Assembly (NCBI RefSeq): GCF_032444005.1
Contig: NW_027193546.1
Span: 806,001 to 870,000 of the forward strand
Direction: 5' to 3'
DNA length: 64,000 bases
Origin: Ranitomeya imitator
Taxonomy: Eukaryota
This document shows positions 4,139 to 19,826 of the stretch, piece after piece. Position numbers and translations under genes: made by a program. The stretch's first letter is position 1; the number at the start of each line of letters is the position of its first letter. The notes under the pieces were generated by a model that worked only from the letters and a program-made list of their open reading frames with translations, was not told the origin of the DNA and did not search any database.

Positions 4139-4900
4139 GCTGCACCTGACTGCTAGGATCTGATTTCTCTGCTTTGGTGATGTCGCTGTAATGTTAGAAC
4201 ACTCATCGGTGCCAACGTTACGCTCCGAATACTGAATAGTCCCAAGGATATCCTGACGTGGAAAGACTAAACGGCTTACCCGAAGCAGATCCCTCTACAG
4301 CTCTAATCAGGGGGGTGTTCAGGGCGGTTTCCAAATGTAGGTTAATATTCTGTCTAGACATTTAATATCCTGTTCTTATTGGGCGCTGATTAGTAGATTT
4401 ATGGGGGATATATATCCGCACTGGGCCGCAGTGATAATTTCCTGATCAGATCCGTGTACAGGGAATGTGGCTGTAGGAGGCAGCTGGATAGATGGACGCC
4501 CTGTGTGTCATCACATAGGGTACGGAGACTCCTATATGATGACCACGTCCTGGACACAAATGTTTCGGGTGGATGGCGCCTCTGAAGACTATTATAACCT
4601 CCTCAGAATAATGATGGGCTGTTTGAGGTCTGATAGCCACGGCTGCGCGTTTTGAGGTCCTGTCATGTATTTATATATATCCGGTGTGTGCAGTGTATGG
4701 GGGGACACAGGTGTTGGTTCTGTTCCCTACAGCTCCTGTCCTGTATATGTATATACAAAGCGTATACATTGTGTGCAGTGTATGGGGGACACAGCGCTGC
4801 CGGGGCCTGGGGTGAAGGTGCCGCATCTGTGGATACTCTGGTAAAGAAAAGATCAGCTGGAAAACGGCACGTAAGGAGTTAAACGGGAGAGGAAAGACGT

Positions 4901-5374
4901 GCAACAAAATTAATAAAGGGGATGGGAGAACTACAATACCCAGATAGATTAGCGAAATTAGGATTATTTAGTCTAGAAAAAAGACGACTGAGGGGCGATC
5001 TAATAACCATGTATAAGTATATAAGGGGACAATACAAATATCTCGCTGAGGATCTGTTTATACCAAGGAAGGTGACGGGCACAAGGGGGCATTCTTTGCG
5101 TCTGGAGGAGAGAAGGTTTTTCCACCAACATAGAAGAGGATTCTTTACTGTTAGGGCAGTGAGAATCTGGAATTGCTTGCCTGAGGAGGTGGTGATGGCG
5201 AACTCAGTCGAGGGGTTCAAGAGAGGCCTGGATGTCTTCCTGGAGCAGAACAATATTGTATCATACAATTAGGTTCTGTAGAGGGACGTAGATCTGGGGA
5301 TTTGTTGTGATGGAGTGTGGGCTGAACTGGAAGGACAAATGTCTTTTTTCGGCCTTACTAACTATGTTACTATG
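4901..5374 (+). mobile_element. 5'-truncated CR1 LINE copy (ORF2 C-terminus, 3' UTR, TTACTATG tail)
   Basis: 4901-5270 is identical to the reverse complement of 7496-7865; ends in TTACTAACTATGTTACTATG. Confidence 0.96.
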
Positions 5375-5744
5375 TACATCACTGAAGGCTGAGCGTTACC
5401 AAGGTTTCTCGCTCATTGTCTGATCACAGAATCCGTTGGGGAATTTGAATTCCCCGCTCATAATCTCCGGAGGATTGTTACAGGTCACTGATAGCGACAA
5501 CCATCCCCCACCCCCTTACTGCGGGACCTGCTAACTACATGTAGACCTCACCGCGGAGTATCAGACACTAAGGAGGGGACATTTCCTGCGAGCTTGGCAG
5601 ACGACACTCCACCTGAGGGTCTGAGACTTCATGTGGGATTGACCCATTCATCTCCTGTTATTCTGTGGATATGTGCACCAACAATGGCGGCAATGGTGTA
5701 TGAACTATCAGCCTCATGCGAGGACCCCCGAGATAGGCGGCGCC

Positions 5745-5784
5745 GGCTCTTGTGGTGACGGTGTGGGTGGCTCTTAGAAGAGCC
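5745..5784 (-). terminator. Histone 3' stem-loop plus HDE of H2A
   Basis: Minus strand GGCTCT TCTA AGAGCC ACCCAC (stem-loop 5769-5784), downstream AAGAGCC at 5745-5751. Confidence 0.93.
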
Positions 5785-5813
5785 TTTGGTTTTGTAGAGA
5801 TTGGCGGCAGCGC

Positions 5814-6206
5814 TCACTTGCTCTTGCTCGCCTTGCTGCTCTCGGTCTTCTTGGGCAGCAGCACGGCCTGGATGTTGGGCAGGACGCCCCCCTGGGCAAT
5901 GGTCACCCCACCCAGCAGCCTGTTCAGCTCCTCGTCATTGCGCACCGCCAGCTGCAGGTGACGGGGGATGATGCGGGTCTTCTTGTTGTCCCGGGCAGCA
6001 TTGCCGGCCAATTCCAGGATCTCAGCGGTCAGATACTCCAGCACAGCGGCCAGATAGACCGGAGCGCCGGCGCCGACTCTCTCAGCGTAGTTGCCCTTGC
6101 GGAGAAGCCTGTGCACACGGCCGACTGGGAACTGCAGTCCTGCCCGGGATGAGCGGGTCTTGGCCTTAGCACGGACCTTTCCTCCTTGTTTGCCGCGTCC
6201 AGACAT
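5814..6206 (-). CDS. H2A: Histone H2A (canonical, 130 aa)
   Basis: [40 protein letters not shown]...[15 protein letters not shown]; stem-loop 29 nt after the stop. Confidence 0.99.
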
Positions 6207-7383
6207 GATGCCGATAACTAATGACGGAAAATCGTGTAGAGAAGAGTCTGTGCTATGTCGCCTTATATAGTCCGTTGCTCCGCCCTCCTCTCCTGTCGTT
6301 GGACGGATCTGAAGATGAAAATGGAGAAGAGTATTGGAGATCCACCAATGAGCTACAGAGGGCAGAGCTTATTATTGCTCCTTTCTCAAATGAGTTTCTC
6401 ACCCAATAGAAAACGTTCGCTTTGGACAGAATAGATAAGGGGTGAAAACAGATATCTGTCCTGGAGCAGAAGGAAATGCAGAAATATTCTGTTGACTTGT
6501 TGTACTTGTGTCTTCTATCAGCCATATATTGCACTGACAGTCTGGCGGGTGAGGGGTTAATTCCTGTCAGGAGGCGGCTCCTCACTCACCCGCTTATTAT
6601 CCTGTGCAGATCCCCTGTGGTGTCCGCGCTTATACTATCACAGCCTGACTGAGACAAGTCTCCTATGTTCTGCCCGGAGCCTGATGTGACGCTGCCGGGT
6701 CTCGGGTGGGGGAAGTCGCCGCTTCTGTAAAGCGAGTGTGTAGTGGGGGGTCAGCACACACGGACACTGAGGAGTTAAATGGAGGCGGATATTCCTGTAT
6801 CTGGGATTGGTCGGCGCCTGCGGATGTCTCTCGCTCATTGGCTGATTACAGATCCGTTGCTGGTTTTGAATTCCCCGCTCAGTTTCTGCTCTTTGTCCGT
6901 CGGGTTTATTACCGGCCCCTTTGCTGGAGCGGCGATCGCTGATAATAGTGTGCGGTATTTTTTCTTCTACTATTAACTTGACCACACGGTCTGTTTTACC
7001 AGCACCTCCGTGTCCTTGACCTGAGTGCACACCATTATCCTTGTTCATGCCCCCAAACACGGGCGGGGATCGGTCGCCATTATTACTCTGGGGAGGTTAT
7101 AATAACCTTCATAGGCGCCATCCATCCGAAACATTAGTGTCCGGGACGTGGTCATCACATAGGAGTCTCCGTACCCGGTACACAGGGCGTCCATCTATCC
7201 AGCTGCCTCAGACAGCCACATTCCCTGTGAATATTCGCTGCCCTATTCACCCCACACGGATCTGATCAGGAGAATATTACTGTACAGCCCATTTCCCTGT
7301 AATTCCGTGTTCTATTTATTTTATATATCAATAAGAAGAAACCGCATTTGTGCTGTGATGGGAGTCACCAGTACTTGGGGCAT
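6053..7383. repeat. Left copy of the 1,331-bp direct duplication flanking the full-length CR1
   Basis: Matches 12102-13432 (offset 6,049); I found one mismatch (6364 A vs 12413 G). Confidence 0.96.
6263..6407 (-). promoter_or_regulatory. H2A promoter (TATA plus CCAAT boxes)
   Basis: Minus-strand CTATATAA at 6263-6270; CCAAT/ATTGG at 6333-6337, 6345-6349 and 6403-6407. Confidence 0.75.
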
Positions 7384-7490
7384 AGTAACATAGTAACATA
7401 GTTAGTAAGGCCGAAAAAAGACATTTGTCCATCCAGTTCAGCCTATATTCCATCATAATAAATACCCAGATCTACGTCCTTCTACAGAAC

Positions 7491-10271
7491 CTAATAATTG
7501 TATGATACAATATTGTTCTGCTCCAGGAAGACATCCAGGCCTCTCTTGAACCCCTCGACTGAGTTCGCCATCACCACCTCCTCAGGCAAGCAATTCCAGA
7601 TTCTCACTGCCCTAACAGTAAAGAATCCTCTTCTATGTTGGTGGAAAAACCTTCTCTCCTCCAGACGCAAAGAATGCCCCCTTGTGCCCGTCACCTTCCT
7701 TGGTATAAACAGATCCTCAGCGAGATATTTGTATTGTCCCCTTATATACTTATACATGGTTATTAGATCGCCCCTCAGTCGTCTTTTTTCTAGACTAAAT
7801 AATCCTAATTTCGCTAATCTATCTGGGTATTGTAGTTCTCCCATCCCCTTTATTAATTTTGTTGCCCTCCTTTGTACTCTCTCTAGTTCCATTATATCCT
7901 TCCTGAGCACCGGTGCCCAAAACTGGACACAGTACTCCATGTGCGGTCTAACTAGGGATTTGTACAGAGGCAGTAGAATGCTCTCATCATGTGTATCCAG
8001 ACCTCTTTTAATGCACCCCATGATCCTGTTTGCCTTGGCAGCTGCTGCCTGGCACTGGCTGCTCCAGGTAAGTTTATCATTAACTAGGATCCCCAAGTCC
8101 TTCTCCCTGTCAGATTTACCCAGTGGTTTCCCGTTCAGTGTGTAATGGTGATATTGATTCCCTCTTCCCATGTGTATAACCTTACATTTATCATTGTTAA
8201 ACCTCATCTGCCACCTTTCAGCCCAAGTTTCCAACTTATCCAGATCCATCTGTAGCAGAATACTATCTTCTCTTGTATTAACTGCTTTACATAGTTTTGT
8301 ATCATCTGCAAATATCGATATTTTACTGTGTAAACCTTCTACCAGATCATTAATGAATATGTTGAAGAGAACAGGTCCCAATACTGACCCCTGCGGTACC
8401 CCACTGGTCACAGCGACCCAGTTAGAGACTATACCATTTATAACCACCCTCTGCTTTCTATCACTAAGCCAGTTACTAACCCATTTACACACATTTTCCC
8501 CCAGACCAAGCATTCTCATTTTGTGTACCAACCTCTTGTGCGGCACGGTATCAAACGCTTTGGAAAAATCGAGATATACCACGTCCAATGACTCACCGTG
8601 GTCCAGTCTATAGCTTACCTCTTCATAAAAACTGATTAGATTGGTTTGACAGGAGCGATTTCTCATAAACCCATGCTGATATGGAGTTAAACAGTTATTC
8701 TCATTGAGATAATCCAGAATAACATCCCTCAGAAACCCTTCAAATATTTTACCAACAATAGAGGTTAGACTTACTGGCCTATAATTTCCAGGTTCACTTT
8801 TAGAGCCCTTTTTGAATATTGGCACCACATTTGCTATGCGCCAGTCCTGCGGAACAGACCCTGTCGCTATAGAGTCACTAAAAATAAGAAATAATGGTTT
8901 ATCTATTACATTACTTAGTTCTCTTAGTACTCGTGGGTGTATGCCATCCGGACCCGGAGATTTATCTATTTTAATCTTATTTAGCCGGTTTCGCACCTCT
9001 TCTTGGGTTAGATTGGTGACCCTTAATATAGGGTTTTCATTGTTTCTTGGGATTTCACCTAGCATTTCATTTTCCACCGTGAATACCGTGGAGAAGAAGG
9101 TGTTTAATATGTTAGCTTTTTCCTCGTCATCTACAACCATTCTTTCCTCACTATTTTTTAAGGGGCCTACATTTTCAGTTTTTATTCTTTTACTATTGAT
9201 ATAGTTGAAGAACAGTTTGGGATTAGTTTTACTCTCCTTAGCAATGTGCTTCTCTGTTTCCTTTTTGGCAGCTTTAATTAGTTTTTTAGATAAAGTATTT
9301 TTCTCCCTATAGTTTTGTAGAGCTTCAATGGTGCCATCCTGCTTTAGTAGTGCAAATGCTTTCTTTTTACTGTTAATTGCCTGTCTTACTTCTTTGTTTA
9401 GCCACATTGGGTTTTTCCTATTTCTAGTCCTTTTATTCCCACAAGGTATAAACCGCTTACACTGCCTATTTAGGATGTTCTTAAACATTTCCCATTTATT
9501 ATCTGTATTCTCATTTCTGAGGATATTGTCCCAGTCTACCAGATTAAGGGCATCTCTAAGCTGTTCAAACTTTGCCTTCCTAAAGTTCAATGTTTTTGTG
9601 ACTCCCTGACAAGTCCCCCTAGTGAAAGACAGGTGAAACTGCACAATATTGTGGTCGCTATTTCCTAAATGCCCAACCACCTGCAGATTTGTTATTCTGT
9701 CAGGTCTATTAGATAGTATTAGGTCTAAAAGTGCTGCTCCTCTGGTTGGATTCTGCACCAATTGTGAAAGATAATTTTTCTTGGTTATTAGCAGAAACCT
9801 GTTGCCTTTATGGGTTTCACAGGTTTCTGTTTCCCAGTTAATATCCGGGTAGTTAAAGTCCCCCATAACCAGGACCTCATTATGAGTTGCAGCTTCATCT
9901 ATCTGCTTTAGAAGTAGACTTTCCATGCTTTCTGTTATATTTGGGGGTTTGTAACAGACCCCAATGAGAATTTTGTTACCATTTTTCCCTCCATGAATTT
10001 CAACCCATATGGACTCGACATCCTCATTCCCTTCGCTAATATCCTCCCTTAAAGTGGACTTTAGACAAGACTTTACATAGAGACAAACCCCTCCTCCTCT
10101 CCGATTTTTACGATCCTTTCTAAACAGACTGTAACCCTGTAAGTTAACTGCCCAGTCATAGCTTTCATCTAACCATGTCTCGGTTATTCCCACTATGTCA
10201 AAGTTACCTGTAGATATTTCTGCTTCTAGTTCTTCCATCTTGTTTGTCAGGCTTCTGGCGTTTGCGAGCAT
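7491..10271 (-). CDS. CR1 ORF2: AP-endonuclease plus reverse transcriptase (926 aa from the first Met; frame is open further upstream)
   Basis: NARSL, GITETW, GDFNYP and SDHN endonuclease motifs; PGPDG, YRPVSLTS, QHGF, YLDFSKAFD, GVPQGSVLGP and FADD RT motifs; no stops. Confidence 0.97.
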   Translation of the reverse strand: MLANARSLTNKMEELEAEISTGNFDIVGITETWLDESYDWAVNLQGYSLFRKDRKNRRGGGVCLYVKSCLKSTLREDISEGNEDVESIWVEIHGGKNGNKILIGVCYKPPNITESMESLLLKQIDEAATHNEVLVMGDFNYPDINWETETCETHKGNRFLLITKKNYLSQLVQNPTRGAALLDLILSNRPDRITNLQVVGHLGNSDHNIVQFHLSFTRGTCQGVTKTLNFRKAKFEQLRDALNLVDWDNILRNENTDNKWEMFKNILNRQCKRFIPCGNKRTRNRKNPMWLNKEVRQAINSKKKAFALLKQDGTIEALQNYREKNTLSKKLIKAAKKETEKHIAKESKTNPKLFFNYINSKRIKTENVGPLKNSEERMVVDDEEKANILNTFFSTVFTVENEMLGEIPRNNENPILRVTNLTQEEVRNRLNKIKIDKSPGPDGIHPRVLRELSNVIDKPLFLIFSDSIATGSVPQDWRIANVVPIFKKGSKSEPGNYRPVSLTSIVGKIFEGFLRDVILDYLNENNCLTPYQHGFMRNRSCQTNLISFYEEVSYRLDHGESLDVVYLDFSKAFDTVPHKRLVHKMRMLGLGENVCKWVSNWLSDRKQRVVINGIVSNWVAVTSGVPQGSVLGPVLFNIFINDLVEGLHSKISIFADDTKLCKAVNTREDSILLQMDLDKLETWAERWQMRFNNDKCKVIHMGRGNQYHHYTLNGKPLGKSDREKDLGILVNDKLTWSSQCQAAAAKANRIMGCIKRGLDTHDESILLPLYKSLVRPHMEYCVQFWAPVLRKDIMELERVQRRATKLIKGMGELQYPDRLAKLGLFSLEKRRLRGDLITMYKYIRGQYKYLAEDLFIPRKVTGTRGHSLRLEERRFFHQHRRGFFTVRAVRIWNCLPEEVVMANSVEGFKRGLDVFLEQNNIVSYNY

Positions 10272-10408
10272 GCAGTTTAGAGGATTTTGTTTTGTTCCAA
10301 TCTCCTCACTGTGGATTGTTTTAGAAATGTTCTTACCTCCCTTCTGAGTATGTTTTCCTGGGTCGTCTTTGTTCGAGTCTAATGTTTTTCTTCCCGTCCC
10401 CTCTTCTT

Positions 10409-11362
10409 CTAGTTTAACGCCCTCCTGATGAGTGTAGCGAGTCTTCTGGCGAATGTGTGTTTCCCAGGTTTGTTGAGGTGTAGTCCGTCTCTGGCAAGGA
10501 GTCCATCATACCAGTAATTCACACCGTGGTCCAGGAATCCAAATCCTTGTTGTCTGCACCATCGTCTTAGCCAGTTGTTTGCATCAAGGATCCTGTTCCA
10601 TCTCCTGGTGCCATGCCCGTCTACTGGAAGGATAGAAGAAAAAACTACCTGTGCATCCAGTTCCTTTACTTTCTTCCCCAACTCTTCAAAGTCCTTGCAG
10701 ATTGTCGGTAGGTCCTTCCTTGCCGTGTCATTGGTGCCAACATGTATCAGAAGAAATGGGTGGACGTCCTTGGAGCTGAAGAGCTTTGGTATCCTATCGG
10801 TCACATCCTTGATCATCGCACCTGGAAGGCAGCATACTTCTCTTGCAGTTATGTCCGGTCTGCAGATGGCTGCTTCGGTGCCTCTCAGTAGTGAGTCTCC
10901 CACCACCACCACTCTTCGTTGCTTCTTGGCTGTACTTTTTGCTGTCACTTGTTGCTGTGTGCCCTTTTCTTTTTTGCTTGCTGGTATTGCTTCATTCTTA
11001 GGTGTGCCATCTTCATCCTCTACAAAGATTTGATATCGGTTCTTCAGTTGTGTGGTTGGTGATTTCTCCATGGTCTTCTTGCTTCTTTTGGTCACATGCT
11101 TCCACTCATCTGCTTTTGGAGGTTCTCTGACACTTTTTGCACCTTCTGTGACCAGTAGAGATGCTTCTGTTCTGTCTAGAAAGTCTTCATTCTCTTTGAT
11201 GAGTTTCAAAGTTGCTATTCTTTCTTCCAGACCCCGCACCTTTTCTTCTAAAAGGGCCACTAGTCTACACTTCTGACAGGTGAAATTGGATTCTTCTTCT
11301 GGTCGATCTGTGAACATGTAGCACATGCTGCAGCTCACCATGTAGGTTGTCACATCTGCCAT
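10409..11362 (-). CDS. CR1 ORF1: CxxC..CxxC zinc finger, coiled coil, SGNH/GDSL esterase (317 aa)
   Basis: CSMC...CQKC; SGNH blocks VGDSLLRG, LPGA, HVGTND and DGLH are intact. Confidence 0.93.
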   Translation of the reverse strand: MADVTTYMVSCSMCYMFTDRPEEESNFTCQKCRLVALLEEKVRGLEERIATLKLIKENEDFLDRTEASLLVTEGAKSVREPPKADEWKHVTKRSKKTMEKSPTTQLKNRYQIFVEDEDGTPKNEAIPASKKEKGTQQQVTAKSTAKKQRRVVVVGDSLLRGTEAAICRPDITAREVCCLPGAMIKDVTDRIPKLFSSKDVHPFLLIHVGTNDTARKDLPTICKDFEELGKKVKELDAQVVFSSILPVDGHGTRRWNRILDANNWLRRWCRQQGFGFLDHGVNYWYDGLLARDGLHLNKPGKHTFARRLATLIRRALN

Positions 11363-11463
11363 GTTGCTCCTAGATCCTGCTGACTTGCTGTGTGTTTTCC
11401 TTCTTGTGTAATCTACTCAGCCAAGCTCTCTTGCAATAATGTCCTACAGGCAAAAATTCGCGC

Positions 11464-12097
11464 GGTTTGGTGATGCTTTCGAAGCAGCTGGTCCCGGCTG
11501 TACCCAACGATCTTCTAGCTTAGGGAGACTTCGCTTCTCCCAGAAGGCACCTGGAATATGCAAATTAGCCTCCTGAAGCTTGAATCCCTGGTTTGGTGAT
11601 GCTTTCGAAGCAGCTGGTCCCGGCTGTACCCAACGATCTTCTAGCTTAGGGAGACTTCGCTTCTCCCAGAAGGCACCTGGAATATTCAAATTAGCCTCCT
11701 GAAGCTTGAATCCCTGGTTTGGTGATGCTTTCGAAGCAGCTGGTCCCGGCTGTACCCAACGATCTTCTAGCTTAGGGAGACTTCGCTTCTCCCAGAAGGC
11801 ACCTGGAATATGCAAATTAGCCTCCTGAAGCTTGAATCCCTGGTTTGGTGATGCTTTCGAAGCAGCTGGTCCCGGCTGTACCCAACGATCTTCTAGCTTA
11901 GGGAGACTTCGCTTCTCCCAGAAGGCACCTGGAATATGCAAATTAGCCTCCTGAAGCTTGAATCCCTGGTTTGGTGATGCTTTCGAAGCAGCTGGTCCCG
12001 GCTGTACCCAACGATCTTCTAGCTTAGGGAGACTTCGCTTCTCCCAGAAGGCACCTGGAATATGCAAATTAGCCTCCTGAAGCTTGAATCCCTGGTT
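11464..12097 (-). repeat. Five 126-bp tandem monomers forming the CR1 5' UTR
   Basis: Units start at 11464, 11590, 11716, 11842 and 11968 (4-nt stub at 12094); one substitution seen, in unit 2. Confidence 0.96.
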
Positions 12098-12255
12098 CAA
12101 GGATAGACCGGAGCGCCGGCGCCGACTCTCTCAGCGTAGTTGCCCTTGCGGAGAAGCCTGTGCACACGGCCGACTGGGAACTGCAGTCCTGCCCGGGATG
12201 AGCGGGTCTTGGCCTTAGCACGGACCTTTCCTCCTTGTTTGCCGCGTCCAGACAT
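12097..12255 (-). pseudogene. H2A: Truncated H2A (51 H2A codons plus Pro, then TGA) fused to the CR1 5' end
   Basis: MSGRGKQ...GAGAPVYP*; identical to the H2A 5' end as far as 12102, with the stop codon supplied by the junction. Confidence 0.93.
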
Positions 12256-13432
12256 GATGCCGATAACTAATGACGGAAAATCGTGTAGAGAAGAGTCTGT
12301 GCTATGTCGCCTTATATAGTCCGTTGCTCCGCCCTCCTCTCCTGTCGTTGGACGGATCTGAAGATGAAAATGGAGAAGAGTATTGGAGATCCACCAATGA
12401 GCTACAGAGGGCGGAGCTTATTATTGCTCCTTTCTCAAATGAGTTTCTCACCCAATAGAAAACGTTCGCTTTGGACAGAATAGATAAGGGGTGAAAACAG
12501 ATATCTGTCCTGGAGCAGAAGGAAATGCAGAAATATTCTGTTGACTTGTTGTACTTGTGTCTTCTATCAGCCATATATTGCACTGACAGTCTGGCGGGTG
12601 AGGGGTTAATTCCTGTCAGGAGGCGGCTCCTCACTCACCCGCTTATTATCCTGTGCAGATCCCCTGTGGTGTCCGCGCTTATACTATCACAGCCTGACTG
12701 AGACAAGTCTCCTATGTTCTGCCCGGAGCCTGATGTGACGCTGCCGGGTCTCGGGTGGGGGAAGTCGCCGCTTCTGTAAAGCGAGTGTGTAGTGGGGGGT
12801 CAGCACACACGGACACTGAGGAGTTAAATGGAGGCGGATATTCCTGTATCTGGGATTGGTCGGCGCCTGCGGATGTCTCTCGCTCATTGGCTGATTACAG
12901 ATCCGTTGCTGGTTTTGAATTCCCCGCTCAGTTTCTGCTCTTTGTCCGTCGGGTTTATTACCGGCCCCTTTGCTGGAGCGGCGATCGCTGATAATAGTGT
13001 GCGGTATTTTTTCTTCTACTATTAACTTGACCACACGGTCTGTTTTACCAGCACCTCCGTGTCCTTGACCTGAGTGCACACCATTATCCTTGTTCATGCC
13101 CCCAAACACGGGCGGGGATCGGTCGCCATTATTACTCTGGGGAGGTTATAATAACCTTCATAGGCGCCATCCATCCGAAACATTAGTGTCCGGGACGTGG
13201 TCATCACATAGGAGTCTCCGTACCCGGTACACAGGGCGTCCATCTATCCAGCTGCCTCAGACAGCCACATTCCCTGTGAATATTCGCTGCCCTATTCACC
13301 CCACACGGATCTGATCAGGAGAATATTACTGTACAGCCCATTTCCCTGTAATTCCGTGTTCTATTTATTTTATATATCAATAAGAAGAAACCGCATTTGT
13401 GCTGTGATGGGAGTCACCAGTACTTGGGGCAT
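12102..13432. repeat. Right copy of the 1,331-bp direct duplication (H2A 5' end, promoter and upstream spacer)
   Basis: Matches 6053-7383. Confidence 0.96.
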
Positions 13433-13599
13433 CTTACAGTCAGACTTGTGATCGGATCTCTCTGCACTGCAGTGGTTTTATCTCACGTCATATTAACCCT
13501 ATGAGATCTATGGCATTCGTTTTACATTATTACATCTAGTGCTAGAGGATCCTATCCTGCAATTGTATTGGGATATTTCTCCCATGATTCGTTGTTCCC

Positions 13600-14543
13600 C
13601 TCCACATTCTCGGAACTTCTACATGTGGGCAAAACAGAATTCATTGTCTTTCCCACATCACACGCAACCCCCCAACGAACCTATCCATTACAGGAAACGG
13701 CTGCCCACTCTCCTCAGTCCAAGTTCGCTGCCTCGGGGTAATCCTTGACACTCATCTCTCCTTCAAACCTCATATCCAAGCCCTTTCCACTTCCTGCCGC
13801 CTTCAACTCAAAATATTTCAAGGATCTATAGATTTCTAAACCAAGAATCTGCAAAAACCCTAGTCTATGCCCTCATCATCTCCCGCCTGGACTACTGTAA
13901 CCTCCTGCTCTGTGGCCTCCCCTCTAACACTCTCGCACCCCTCCTATCTATTCTAAACTCTCCTGCCCGACTAACCAACCTGTCCCCCGCTATTCCCCGG
14001 CCTCTCCCCTCTGTCAATCCCTTCACTGGCTCCCCATTACCCAGAGACTCCAGTACAAAAGCCTAACCATGACATACAAAGCCATCCACAAAATGTCTCC
14101 TTTATACATCTGTGACCTCCTCTCCCGGTACTTTCCTGCAACCTCCGATCCTCACAAGATCTCCTTCTCTACTCCCCTCTTATCTCCTCTTCCCACAATC
14201 GCATACAAGATTTATCTTGCGCATCACCCCTACTCTGGAACCCTCTACCACAACACATCAGACTCTCACCTACCATGGAAACCTTCAAAAAGAGCCTAAA
14301 GACCCACCTCTTCCGACAAGCCTACAACCTGCAGTAACCACCACTGATCGACCAGCTCTACCTTCACCTACTGTATCCTCATCCATCCATTGTAGATTGC
14401 GAGCCCTCGTGGGCAGGGTCCTCTCTCCTCCTGTACCAGTTATGACTTGTATTGTTCAAGATCATTGTACCTGTTATTATGTATACACCTCCTCACATGT
14501 AAAGCGCCATGGAATAAATGGCGCTATAATAATAAATAATAAT
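13600..14543 (+). mobile_element. Degenerate 5'-truncated L2/CR1-group LINE (RT C-terminal region plus 3' UTR)
   Basis: Broken frames read KTEFIVFP..VRCLGVILD..LSFKPHI..ALIISRLDYCNLLLCGLP..LHWLPITQR. Ends in the hairpin AGCGCCAT-ggaataa-ATGGCGCT (14503-14525) plus (AAT)n. The 5' boundary is approximate. Confidence 0.85.
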
Positions 14544-15548
14544 ATTGCCCGAGAGCCGCCAGTCCTGACACTAGATGAAGCGGGGGAAGAAAAGTGATAG
14601 AACAGAAGGACGATCAGTAACTGAGCAGGGATCCTGTGAGGAGGATGTGACGGCCGATAATGTAACTGCCTGACCTGTGAGATCCTGACACCACAGGGTA
14701 ATGTTCTGAGCAGGGACACTCCGCAATCTTCTACACATGATCCTACATTTCCCATCACAGACCTCCTGCCTGCAGCCGTAGGACTGATCTGTAATGGGGA
14801 GACATGGTGGGATCTGCTGGGAAGGGCAGAATTGGTCTTCCCTGAAATGTCTCTTGTAGGATATGTCCCTGACCAGTATATCGTCTCCACAATACGGATT
14901 GTGACGGGAAAGGGACGATCTGATCGTCTCCAGGTCAGACACACGGGAACATCACAGCATGTGGAGAACACGAATCATTCTCTATATCCATGAGAGGAAA
15001 CCGGAGCGGATACAGCGCCGCTAACCTGGAAATCTGCAGATTCCTGTGTGGGATGTAAGAGACCAATGATCGCTCAACACAAGCAGATTTCCCGATATCG
15101 GTCCTGGGACCAGGTGTTATATGAAGACAAAAGACGGAAAAAAGCGGGAACCGTAAACGTGTTACCATTGGAAACATTAGCTCCTCCCTCTGCTGATTGG
15201 CTGAACACAGGACGGTTGGGGGTTTGAATTTCCCGCCGCTTCTAAATGTAATGACGTCACTTACACTGTAAAAAGAATCCAGATTAGGCTCTAGATCAAC
15301 TCCACCACAAATGGCTCCTGTTACCTGAGAAATGAGAGTAATGAACTAATAAACGAGACCCCAGAATGCCGAGATCTGTGCAGCAAGGAGTTAAATAAGA
15401 AGTCCCTGAATACACATCAACTCGCTGAGCAATGCCCAGATTATTCCTGAGATTTTCTCACCATCTCCCTCGTCACCAGGCGCAGAGCCCCGGGCGGAGC
15501 GAGCAGACACCTCGGGAAGACGGGAGAGGACACCGGAGCAGTGTGGGT

Positions 15549-15588
15549 GGCTCTTGTAGTGAGGGTGTGGGTGGCTCTTAGAAGAGCC
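15549..15588 (-). terminator. Histone 3' stem-loop plus HDE of H2B
   Basis: Minus strand GGCTCT TCTA AGAGCC ACCCAC (15573-15588); second AAGAGCC at 15549-15555. Confidence 0.93.
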
Positions 15589-15618
15589 TTTGGGGTGAGG
15601 AGCGGAGCACGGANNNNN

Positions 15619-16017
<399 letters not shown>

Positions 16018-16786: not shown

Positions 16787-16910
16787 GGCTCTTAGGAGGA
16801 GGATGTGGGGGCTCTTAGAAGAGCCTTTGAGTGTGTGGACAGATGTGGAGGAGCGGAGTTTACAGTCCTGGCACAGCAGACTAGCCGCTTCCTGGATCTA
16901 CGAGGAAACG
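16787..16910 (-). pseudogene. Orphan histone 3' end (stem-loop plus HDE) with a possible decayed H2B-like remnant
   Basis: GGCTCT TCTA AGAGCC at 16810-16825 and AAGAGCC at 16787-16793. The upstream UTR shares CTCCGCTCCTC with the H2B 3' UTR. No intact histone ORF lies upstream. Confidence 0.6.
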
Positions 16911-18412
16911 GCCATTATCTGTCCCAATCACTGCACAAAGTCCTCCTTCAATAAGGGCTAATTTCCAGCTATCTGCAGATTATTCCGAGGCTGAGTTCTG
17001 CGAGCGACACTCAATTTGCACTGACAGTCTGGCGGGTGAGGGGTCAATCCCTGTCAGTGTTTCTCCTCCGCTCCATCTGCACAGGAGGCGGCTCTTCACT
17101 CACCCGCGTATTATCCTGTGCAGATCCCCTGTGGTGTCCGCGCTGATCCTATCACAGCCTGACTGAGACAAGTCTCCTATGTTCTGCCCGGAGCCTGATG
17201 TGACGCTGCCGGGTCTCGGGTGGGGGAAGTCGCCGCTTCTATAAAGCGAGTGAGTAGTGGGGGTCAGCACACAAGGACACTAAGGAGTTAATGGGGGCGG
17301 ATGTTCCTGTATCTGGGATTGGTCGGCGCCTGTGGATGTCTCTCGCTCATTGGCTGATTACAGATCCGTTGCTGGTTTTGAATTTCCCGCTCAATCGCTT
17401 TTCTTTGTCCGTCGGATTATTACCGGCCCCTCTGCTGGAGCGGCGATCGCTGTGTATACCGGTGGGAGCAGCTCTACCCCGCTGATAATACCGGGTCCTG
17501 TCCTCCCAGCTGTCTGCCCCCGAACACGGGGATCAGTCGCCATTATTATTCTGAGGAGGTTATAATAGTCTTCAGAGGCGACATCCATCCGACACATTAG
17601 TGTCCAGGACTTGGTCATCACACAGGAGCCTCCGTACCCGGTACACAGGGCGTCCATCTATCCAGCTGCCTCTTACAGCCACATTCCCTGTACACGGATC
17701 TGATCAGGAAATTATCACTGCGGCCCAGTGCGGATATATATCCCCCATGAATCCATGTTATCTTTGTAGGTCAATGAGAAGAAACCGCATCACCCGAAGT
17801 CCGCGGTGAAAGACGGGGGAGCAGACACGGCCCCAGTATGTCAGGACCCGGGAGCATACAACTAGCACGTCCCAGGCTGAGGCCGGTACTACAGGCAGCC
17901 GCACAGGGGATATTTTGCCCTGCAGAGACGCTGAGCCGGATACTAATCAATCAGCGCCCAATAAGAACAGGATCTTAAATGTCTAGACAGAATATTAACC
18001 TACATTTGGAAACCGCCCGGAACACCCCCTGATTAGAGCTGTAGAGAGATCTGCTTCCAATAAGCCTTTCCACGTCAGGATATCCTTCGGAAACTGAATG
18101 TGTGGGAATATGGTTAAAGAGACCCTACTCCCAGATCATACACACACGGAATCCGTCGGGTACAAAACAGGATTTGCAAATAGGTCTCACAACCAAAAGC
18201 AGCGACAGAACCATCCGCCCAAAAACGGCATCAGAGGACGTTACCGAACTGCGGATCAGGGTCAGAATTACCATTCCCCACAATTATTTGGCCGATGGTA
18301 GTTTTCGACTATTCAGTATTCGGAGCGTAAATTCGGCACCGATGAGTGTTCTACTAACATTACAGCGACATCACCACAGCAGAGAAATGAGATCCTAGCA
18401 GTCAGGTGCAGC

Positions 18413-19300: not shown

Positions 19301-19311
19301 CCCTATACAAT

Positions 19312-19826
19312 GTAACATAGTAACATAGTTAGTAAGGCCGAAAAAATACATTTGTCCTTCCAGTTCAGCCTATATTCCATCATAATAAATCCCCAGATCT
19401 ACGTCCTTCTACAGAACCTAATAATTGTATGATACAATATTGTTCTGCTCCAGGAAGACATCCAGGCCTCTCTTGAACCCCTCGACTGAGTTCGCCATCA
19501 CCACCTCCTCAGGCAAGCAATTCCAGATTCTCACTGCCCTAACAGTAAAGAATCCTCTTCTATGTTGGTGGAAAAACCTTCTCTCTTCCAGACGCAAAGA
19601 ATGCCCCCTTGTGCCCGTCACCTTCCTTGGTATAAACAGATCCTCAGCGAGATATTTGTATTGTCCCCTTATATACTTATACATGGTTATTAGATCGCCC
19701 CGTCTTTTTTCTAGACTAAATAATCCTAATTTCGCTAACCTATCTGGGTATTGTAGTTCTCCCATTCCCTTTATTAATTTTGTTGGCCTCCTTTGTACTC
19801 TCTCTAGTTCCATTATATCCTTCCTG
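19312..19826 (-). mobile_element. Third, 5'-truncated CR1 copy
   Basis: Same ORF2 C-terminus, 3' UTR and tail as the full-length element, with a 6-nt deletion (EKRRG vs EKRRLRG) and a few substitutions. Confidence 0.95.

Follow-up and report, generated by a model that had tools for sequence, protein, structure and literature searches.

Target-site duplications of kilobase length have been documented almost only for marked long interspersed nuclear elements (LINEs) in cultured or tumour cells. In wild-type DT40 cells, one of 25 insertions of the zebrafish L2-clade element ZfL2-2 was accompanied by a 1228-bp duplication, the proposed cause being breakage of the second strand at a site well downstream of the first nick (Suzuki et al. 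2009, PMC2666801). For L1, duplications of more than 100 bp accounted for less than 10% of the events in HeLa cells, and were as long as 1.6 kb in complemented cells and 5.3 kb in cells deficient in excision repair (PMC5223499; large L1 target-site duplications are there referred, in the citing passage, to Gilbert 2002/2005 and Symer 2002); L1-associated tandem duplications of 1-10 kb have been regarded as large target-site duplications and ascribed to break-induced replication (10.1101/2024.12.14.628481). As mechanisms for L1, either a second nick at a distance or break-induced replication has been proposed, and large L1 duplications can copy functional sequence such as exons (PMC5223499; 10.1101/2024.12.14.628481). 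The present analysis concerns a stretch of 64,000 nucleotides from the dendrobatid frog Ranitomeya imitator (assembly GCF_032444005.1, contig NW_027193546.1, positions 806,001 to 870,000 of the forward strand; hereafter the window, numbered from its first letter), in which a full-length CR1-type LINE is located at a gene of histone H2A: Most probably, the element was inserted in the H2A gene with a target-site duplication of 1331 bp, and the second copy of the H2A promoter now present at this locus arose as a by-product.

The repeat survey was performed as a k-mer offset scan of all 64 kb, and the features on which the argument depends are the following (aa, amino acids; ORF, open reading frame):

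6053..7383, no strand assigned: left (3'-side) copy of the direct repeat, spanning 1177 bp upstream of the ATG, with the promoter, and H2A codons 1-51
12102..13432, no strand assigned: right (5'-side) copy of the direct repeat, recognised by offset identity with the left copy
7384..12101, minus strand: full-length CR1-type LINE of 4718 bp, filling the gap between the two repeat copies exactly
12098..12101, minus strand: 4-nt filler (CTTG, sense) at the 5' junction, fitting neither the monomer consensus nor H2A
5814..6206, minus strand: intact replication-type histone H2A gene, 130 aa (ORF, translation, Pfam Histone and Histone_H2A_C)
5744..5789, minus strand: 3' stem-loop of the intact H2A gene (stem 5769-5784) with downstream purine-rich element (Rfam RF00032)
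12097..12255, minus strand: truncated H2A ORF of 51 H2A codons, Pro and stop (ATG 12255-12253, TGA 12099-12097)
12256..12470, minus strand: duplicated H2A promoter (direct reading and motif scan)

The self-match at offset 6049 (6053-7383 equal to 12102-13432) extends over 1331 bp with one mismatch, 6364 A versus 12413 G, which is far beyond chance; the sequences directly beyond these limits are unrelated between the copies, and in the whole 64 kb the scan found, apart from the CR1 3' ends, no further dispersed repeat that is long and near-identical. The inner ends of the repeat meet both termini of the CR1 element to the base, and a direct repeat in this position is therefore to be regarded as a target-site duplication. 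Read on the minus strand, the segment 13432-12102, of which the last 370 bp comprise the H2A promoter, the leader, the ATG (12255) and 51 codons, is succeeded by the filler (12101-12098), the CR1 element down to 7384 and the segment 7383-6053, after which the H2A gene runs unbroken to 5814 and is followed by its 3' stem-loop (5789-5744); the whole structure spans 7.4 kb. A preliminary description of the window, made from the letters alone, had placed the fusion of H2A codon 51 to the CR1 5' end correctly at 12101/12102, and its TATA box, CCAAT boxes and ATG, pointing in sense into the CR1 element, hold as well, as does its view that the element is intact, with monomers and two ORFs downstream of the promoter copy in the same sense; both ORFs have kept their catalytic motifs. 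However, it took the promoter to have been captured by the retrotransposon, whereas the promoter belongs to one arm of the 1331-bp target-site duplication, whose copies adjoin the element exactly on either side. The sense-oriented promoter copy stands in front of the CR1 element because the duplication of the interval left it there automatically; it is thus neither an acquired nor a selected feature.

Both junctions exhibit the hallmarks of target-primed reverse transcription, i.e. an intact element 3' end, microhomology and a 5' filler. At the 3' junction, the last three nucleotides (ATG, 7383-7381) fit the terminal microsatellite of the element and the target alike; at the 5' junction, the Pro codon and the TGA that ends the truncated H2A ORF are formed jointly by the filler and the first monomer base. 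With the order of nicks and the mechanism of the long duplication adopted from ZfL2-2 and L1 events in cultured cells, the course of events would be as follows: A recently active CR1 element of a dendrobatid frog would have been retrotransposed into the histone cluster, with the first nick in the plus strand approximately 1.18 kb upstream of the H2A gene, and reverse transcription would have been primed where the CR1 microsatellite, which ends in ...AUG-3', paired with the ...CAT-3' end of the target. The second strand would have been broken 1331 bp from the first nick, within H2A codon 52, and fill-in of both single-stranded arms would then have duplicated the entire interval. The expected product on the minus strand is upstream DNA, promoter plus 51 codons, the CR1 element, and again upstream DNA, promoter, complete H2A and stem-loop. 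As a result of the target duplication, the H2A gene survived although the 5' junction lies in its coding sequence.

In comparison with the described systems, the frog locus resembles the ZfL2-2 case in the type of element (a CR1-group LINE), the 3' tail without poly(A) and the nearly equal size of the duplication. The former is, however, a natural endogenous full-length insertion, either fixed or segregating in the germline, instead of a marked element in cultured chicken cells, and its duplicated interval contains the promoter and the 5' coding part of a gene. With L1 it shares the kilobase direct repeat at both element ends, an outcome that is rare for L1 in repair-proficient cells; it differs in its natural origin (the L1 examples derive from cell culture or tumours), and in possessing a hairpin and an 8-mer microsatellite with 3-nt junction microhomology in place of the poly(A) tail and TTTT/AA target of L1. 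Cellular promoters that lie upstream also drive transcription of L1 copies, with 5' transduction. The cellular promoter upstream of a full-length LINE and in its sense is common to these copies and the frog CR1 element, yet in the former the promoter pre-exists at the landing site and in the latter its copy was made by the insertion; such a combination could give rise to chimeric RNAs and to offspring with flanking 5' sequence. The locus therefore provides a clean natural example from a vertebrate germline with a CR1 element, in which a LINE insertion with its 5' junction in a coding sequence can spare the gene and the LINE can be provided with a complete host promoter in sense upon insertion. 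It is a natural germline case of a documented insertion outcome, real but mostly ordinary, and constitutes a concrete case for the role of promoter copies in LINE expression and for the cause of distant second-strand breaks.

The intact H2A gene encodes a protein that is annotated in identical form in several assemblies. Its stem-loop has a canonical stem and was the sole minus-strand match to RF00032 (Histone3) in 5600-12400 (33.2 bits, E=1e-6); at the Rfam gathering score of 34 it was missed and it was recovered by the E-value run. The 51 H2A codons of the truncated ORF are identical to those of the intact gene and are followed by Pro and TGA, in accordance with the 52-codon ORF and the stop at 12099-12097 of the preliminary description. 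With 51 of 130 codons, the right-hand copy contains no complete histone-fold coding sequence; a Pfam search of its product gave no match, the RF00032 search of the minus strand from 12255 to 5789 showed that the truncated H2A has no stem-loop and downstream element of its own, and the exact-product look-up returned no gene model on record with the 52-aa product. For annotation, caution is advisable: The truncated H2A is not a decayed paralogue. Its promoter copy comprises a TATA box (TATATAAGG) at 12318-12310 of the minus strand, a CCAAT box at 12386-12382 (minus), two inverted CCAAT boxes at 12394-12398 and 12452-12456 (plus), and a GC box, GGGCGG, at 12409-12414, which reads GGGCAG in the left copy; the sole difference between the promoter copies (12413 G versus 6364 A) is a CpG site within this GC box. 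The H2A gene has no divergently transcribed H2B partner in its upstream region (6207-6500 / 12256-12550), and the plus strand contains no histone coding sequence there. Past the shared CCAAT boxes, the plus strand carries the TATA-like AATAGATAAGG, and this region may be a relic of a lost H2B gene.

The CR1 element itself comprises the following parts (UTR, untranslated region; TRF, Tandem Repeats Finder):

11363..12097, minus strand: 5' UTR, consisting of a unique part (11363-11467, 105 bases) and five 126-bp monomers (11468-12097; TRF, monomer register)
10409..11362, minus strand: ORF1, 317 aa, esterase (SGNH/GDSL) type, open and of full length
7491..10271, minus strand: ORF2, 926 aa, endonuclease and reverse transcriptase, open and of full length
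7381..7443, minus strand: 3' end with hairpin (7443-7409), followed by the 8-nt microsatellite (ACTATGTT)n (7408-7381; fold, alignment)

The ORF2 product contains the Pfam domains Exo_endo_phos (residues 4-207) and RVT_1 (488-706), aligns end to end with Xenopus tropicalis relatives of 927-934 aa (100% coverage), and has kept all columns that are invariant across ten full-length relatives, including SDH 205-207 and FADD 654-657. Its best matches are elements of 910-1000 aa from frogs, turtles, lizards and birds, a set of relatives that is consistent with canonical CR1 placement. The ORF1 product was matched by Lipase_GDSL_2 (E=3.4e-9) and aligned at 100% coverage with a 320-aa relative from Dendrobates tinctorius and turtle relatives of about 335 aa; full-length relatives were found in frogs, turtles, lizards and birds. 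The best matches of the CR1 proteins (95-99%) were gene models of Ranitomeya imitator, and the exact-product look-ups for ORF1 and ORF2 gave no match. Membership in the CR1 clade is indicated by an ORF that combines an APE-type endonuclease with a reverse transcriptase, the esterase-type ORF1 (used as a CR1-group criterion in PMC13343379), and the 3' hairpin with octamer microsatellite, a 3' end regarded as a CR1 hallmark (10.1101/2021.04.13.439746). Poly(A) is absent from the 3' end, and the fold of the hairpin is weak by itself (z-score -0.9). The 3' boundary of the element is set independently by two further copies in the window, which likewise terminate inside the octamer microsatellite: These are 5'-truncated (4901-5379, plus strand; 19310-19826, minus strand), approximately 0.5 kb long and about 97.5% identical to the full-length copy. 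They were the only other CR1 copies in the window when H2A-tagged offspring were looked for. This CR1 family has been inserted into the histone cluster at least three times.

In the 5' UTR, TRF reported five monomers of 126 bp at 11464-12097 with 99% matches. The sense strand of four of the five monomers contains the octamer ATTTGCAT (at 12069, 11943, 11817 and 11565), which is replaced by ATTTGAAT in the fourth monomer. Directly after the filler, the element begins in exact register with the monomers, which suggests that its transcription begins at monomer boundaries; the octamer-bearing monomers are probably its own promoter. Repeating 5' subunits of the CR1 group (one to five in tandem, 100-500 bp each) were described in a 2026 survey for elements without ORF1 (PMC13343379), whereas the frog element, with a likewise repetitive 5 x 126 bp, combines such subunits with an esterase ORF1. 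The sense strand of the 739-nt 5' UTR including the filler (11363-12101) contains no ATG, the antisense strand ten; the absence from the sense strand has a probability of about 0.017 by shuffling of the non-redundant part. A 218-codon open frame through the monomers (11444-12100) was rejected as a by-product of the repeat length (126 bp, 42 codons), as its Pfam matches included no significant stretch. The monomers in the 5' UTR of mouse L1 act as promoters, and the frog element is similar in having monomers, with a putative promoter function.

The question of which promoter serves the CR1 element separates the insertion with target-site duplication from a further reading, in which the duplicated H2A promoter drives the element at histone-like, S-phase or oocyte levels, yielding an H2A-CR1-H2A RNA of approximately 6.5 kb that ends at the intact H2A stem-loop; H2A sequence might then be transduced, and the N-terminal part of H2A be made as a free peptide. 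This reading appears rather unlikely, even though several features speak for it: The promoter copy is complete, with 1177 bp upstream of the ATG, a TATA box, three CCAAT boxes and a perfect GC box, it is located within the histone cluster and faces a coding-competent CR1 element in sense, no stem-loop intervenes before 5744-5789, and the H2A AUG is the only upstream AUG, since the CR1 5' UTR is free of ATG. Yet the arrangement is explained as a by-product of the duplication without any selection, the element possesses a putative promoter of its own in the octamer-bearing monomers, and no gene model on record has the 52-aa product. Furthermore, an upstream ORF of 52 codons with A at position -3 would precede ORF1 and terminate 735 nt before it. 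Reinitiation after so long an upstream ORF is inefficient, and ORF1 translation should be depressed. The silencing of young LINEs may in addition spread to the adjoining promoter copy.

With regard to the predicted RNA, the stem-loop at 5769-5784 is indeed the first histone-type 3' signal on this strand and lies about 6.5 kb from the promoter copy, as previously proposed; it is, however, not the first 3' signal of any kind. The motif scan of the sense strand detected AATAAA at 9500, 9437, 9186, 7854, 7320 and 6910, and ATTAAA four times: Eight of these AATAAA/ATTAAA motifs are located within ORF2 and precede the stem-loop, as do those at 7320 (61 nt past the CR1 3' end) and 6910, both of which lie before the left H2A promoter as well. 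Because of the latter two, a 6.5-kb RNA terminated at the stem-loop is not the default. Reverse transcription of CR1/L2-type elements starts at their own 3' hairpin and microsatellite, so that no 3' transduction of H2A would be expected. The suggested use of the G at 12413 as a tag for nascent reads does not apply, as this base is positioned approximately 128 nt upstream of the predicted start site and is not contained in the RNA; in consequence, it separates the promoter copies only in DNA-based assays (methylation, chromatin), and a chimeric transcript is identifiable only by reads that cross 12101/12102, since the H2A part of the predicted RNA (about 12285-12102) does not differ from the intact gene.

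The spare promoter, which matches the working copy but for one base that completes the GC box, may well initiate transcription. Such RNAs are expected to contribute little to the supply of CR1 proteins and to be translated poorly, and the monomer promoter of the element should account for its normal expression; that the 52 residues, which lack most of the histone fold, form a stable free tail peptide is speculation. It is improbable that the promoter copy is active to the extent of tying the CR1 element to the histone programme and making it a disproportionate source element, with daughters that carry the H2A leader and 51 codons. If an active promoter copy were true, kilobase target duplications would represent a route by which LINEs gain host promoters upon insertion; the locus is of moderate to low interest if neither transcripts across the junction nor daughters tagged with H2A exist.

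As to the origin of the structure, three points weigh against an insertion with a 1331-bp target-site duplication. The single-copy state of the 1331 bp before the insertion is one that we infer, with the H2A coding sequence, unbroken across 6052/6053, as indirect support; the two truncated CR1 copies in the window have no obvious target duplication, so that kilobase duplications are not the norm of this family; and histone genes are often tandemly arrayed, which leaves room for a deletion between two pre-existing, near-identical tandem H2A units. In that case, the two arms would be old paralogues: The CR1 element would have used the distal end of the segment in one unit for priming and would have been linked to codon 52 of H2A in the next unit, with loss of the intervening DNA. 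The final structure would look identical to the observed one, and deletions of 0.3-50 kb at the target have been described for LINEs (PMC2666801 among the sources). We nevertheless hold this origin to be improbable: A single one of 1331 positions distinguishes the arms, while the sole paralogous matches in the 64 kb are partial and 87-94% identical, the window contains neither a second H2A nor a recurrence of the arm flanks (5380-5810, 13433-14500), and an additional unseen duplication as well as a deletion that erased all trace would be required.

A false duplication introduced during assembly of a heterozygous or repetitive region would fit the near-identity of the arms, the N-run nearby (15614-15898) and a reportedly very repeat-rich genome; it is nonetheless a very remote prospect, since the two junctions (H2A codon 51/CR1 5' end, and CR1 microsatellite/DNA 1.18 kb upstream of H2A) are unique and each needs its own arm, the two being unable to coexist on a linear chromosome with a single arm, since the arms differ at one base, and since the 7.4-kb structure is well inside long-read length. 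Three further candidates were rejected: 5' transduction for the right arm (the arm reaches 1177 bp upstream of the H2A ATG, past the start site, into unique DNA), 3' transduction for the left arm (the arm continues into the remaining H2A and the histone cluster), and a tandem duplication at whose very junction a CR1 element was inserted afterwards, an unnecessary coincidence.

If the arms are taken as the products of an insertion with target-site duplication, their divergence dates the event. One difference in 1331 positions corresponds to K = 7.5e-4 (exact Poisson interval 1.9e-5 to 4.2e-3), and at an assumed rate of 1-3e-9 substitutions per site per year, the insertion would be approximately 0.1-0.4 million years old, with an upper bound of a few million years. 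Gene conversion between the arms could make the insertion appear younger.

The surroundings of the locus are those of a histone cluster, with H1, H4, H2A, H2B, H4 and H3 on a stretch of about 22 kb. Part of the duplicated segment belongs to a dispersed cluster repeat, of which copies with 87-94% identity are present at 6529-7228, 12578-13277, 17013-17691 and 4458-4617; it holds a 30-nt CCAAT-containing motif that occurs exactly three times (6830, 12879, 17342), with a diverged copy near 5407. The H2B gene (15391-15999, minus strand) is broken by a run of 285 N (15614-15898) and has an Rfam-supported stem-loop at 15549-15593, beside which a partial duplicate of the stem-loop flank is found (15541-15560). 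An orphan histone-type stem-loop (GGCTCTTCTAAGAGCC) without adjoining coding sequence is located at 16800-16832 (minus strand); together with the duplicated stem-loop flank, it looks like a relic of cluster rearrangement. Just upstream of the H3 gene, a 36-bp minisatellite extends from 22272 to at least 25500 (about 89 copies, 90% matches) and yields long spurious ORFs on both strands.

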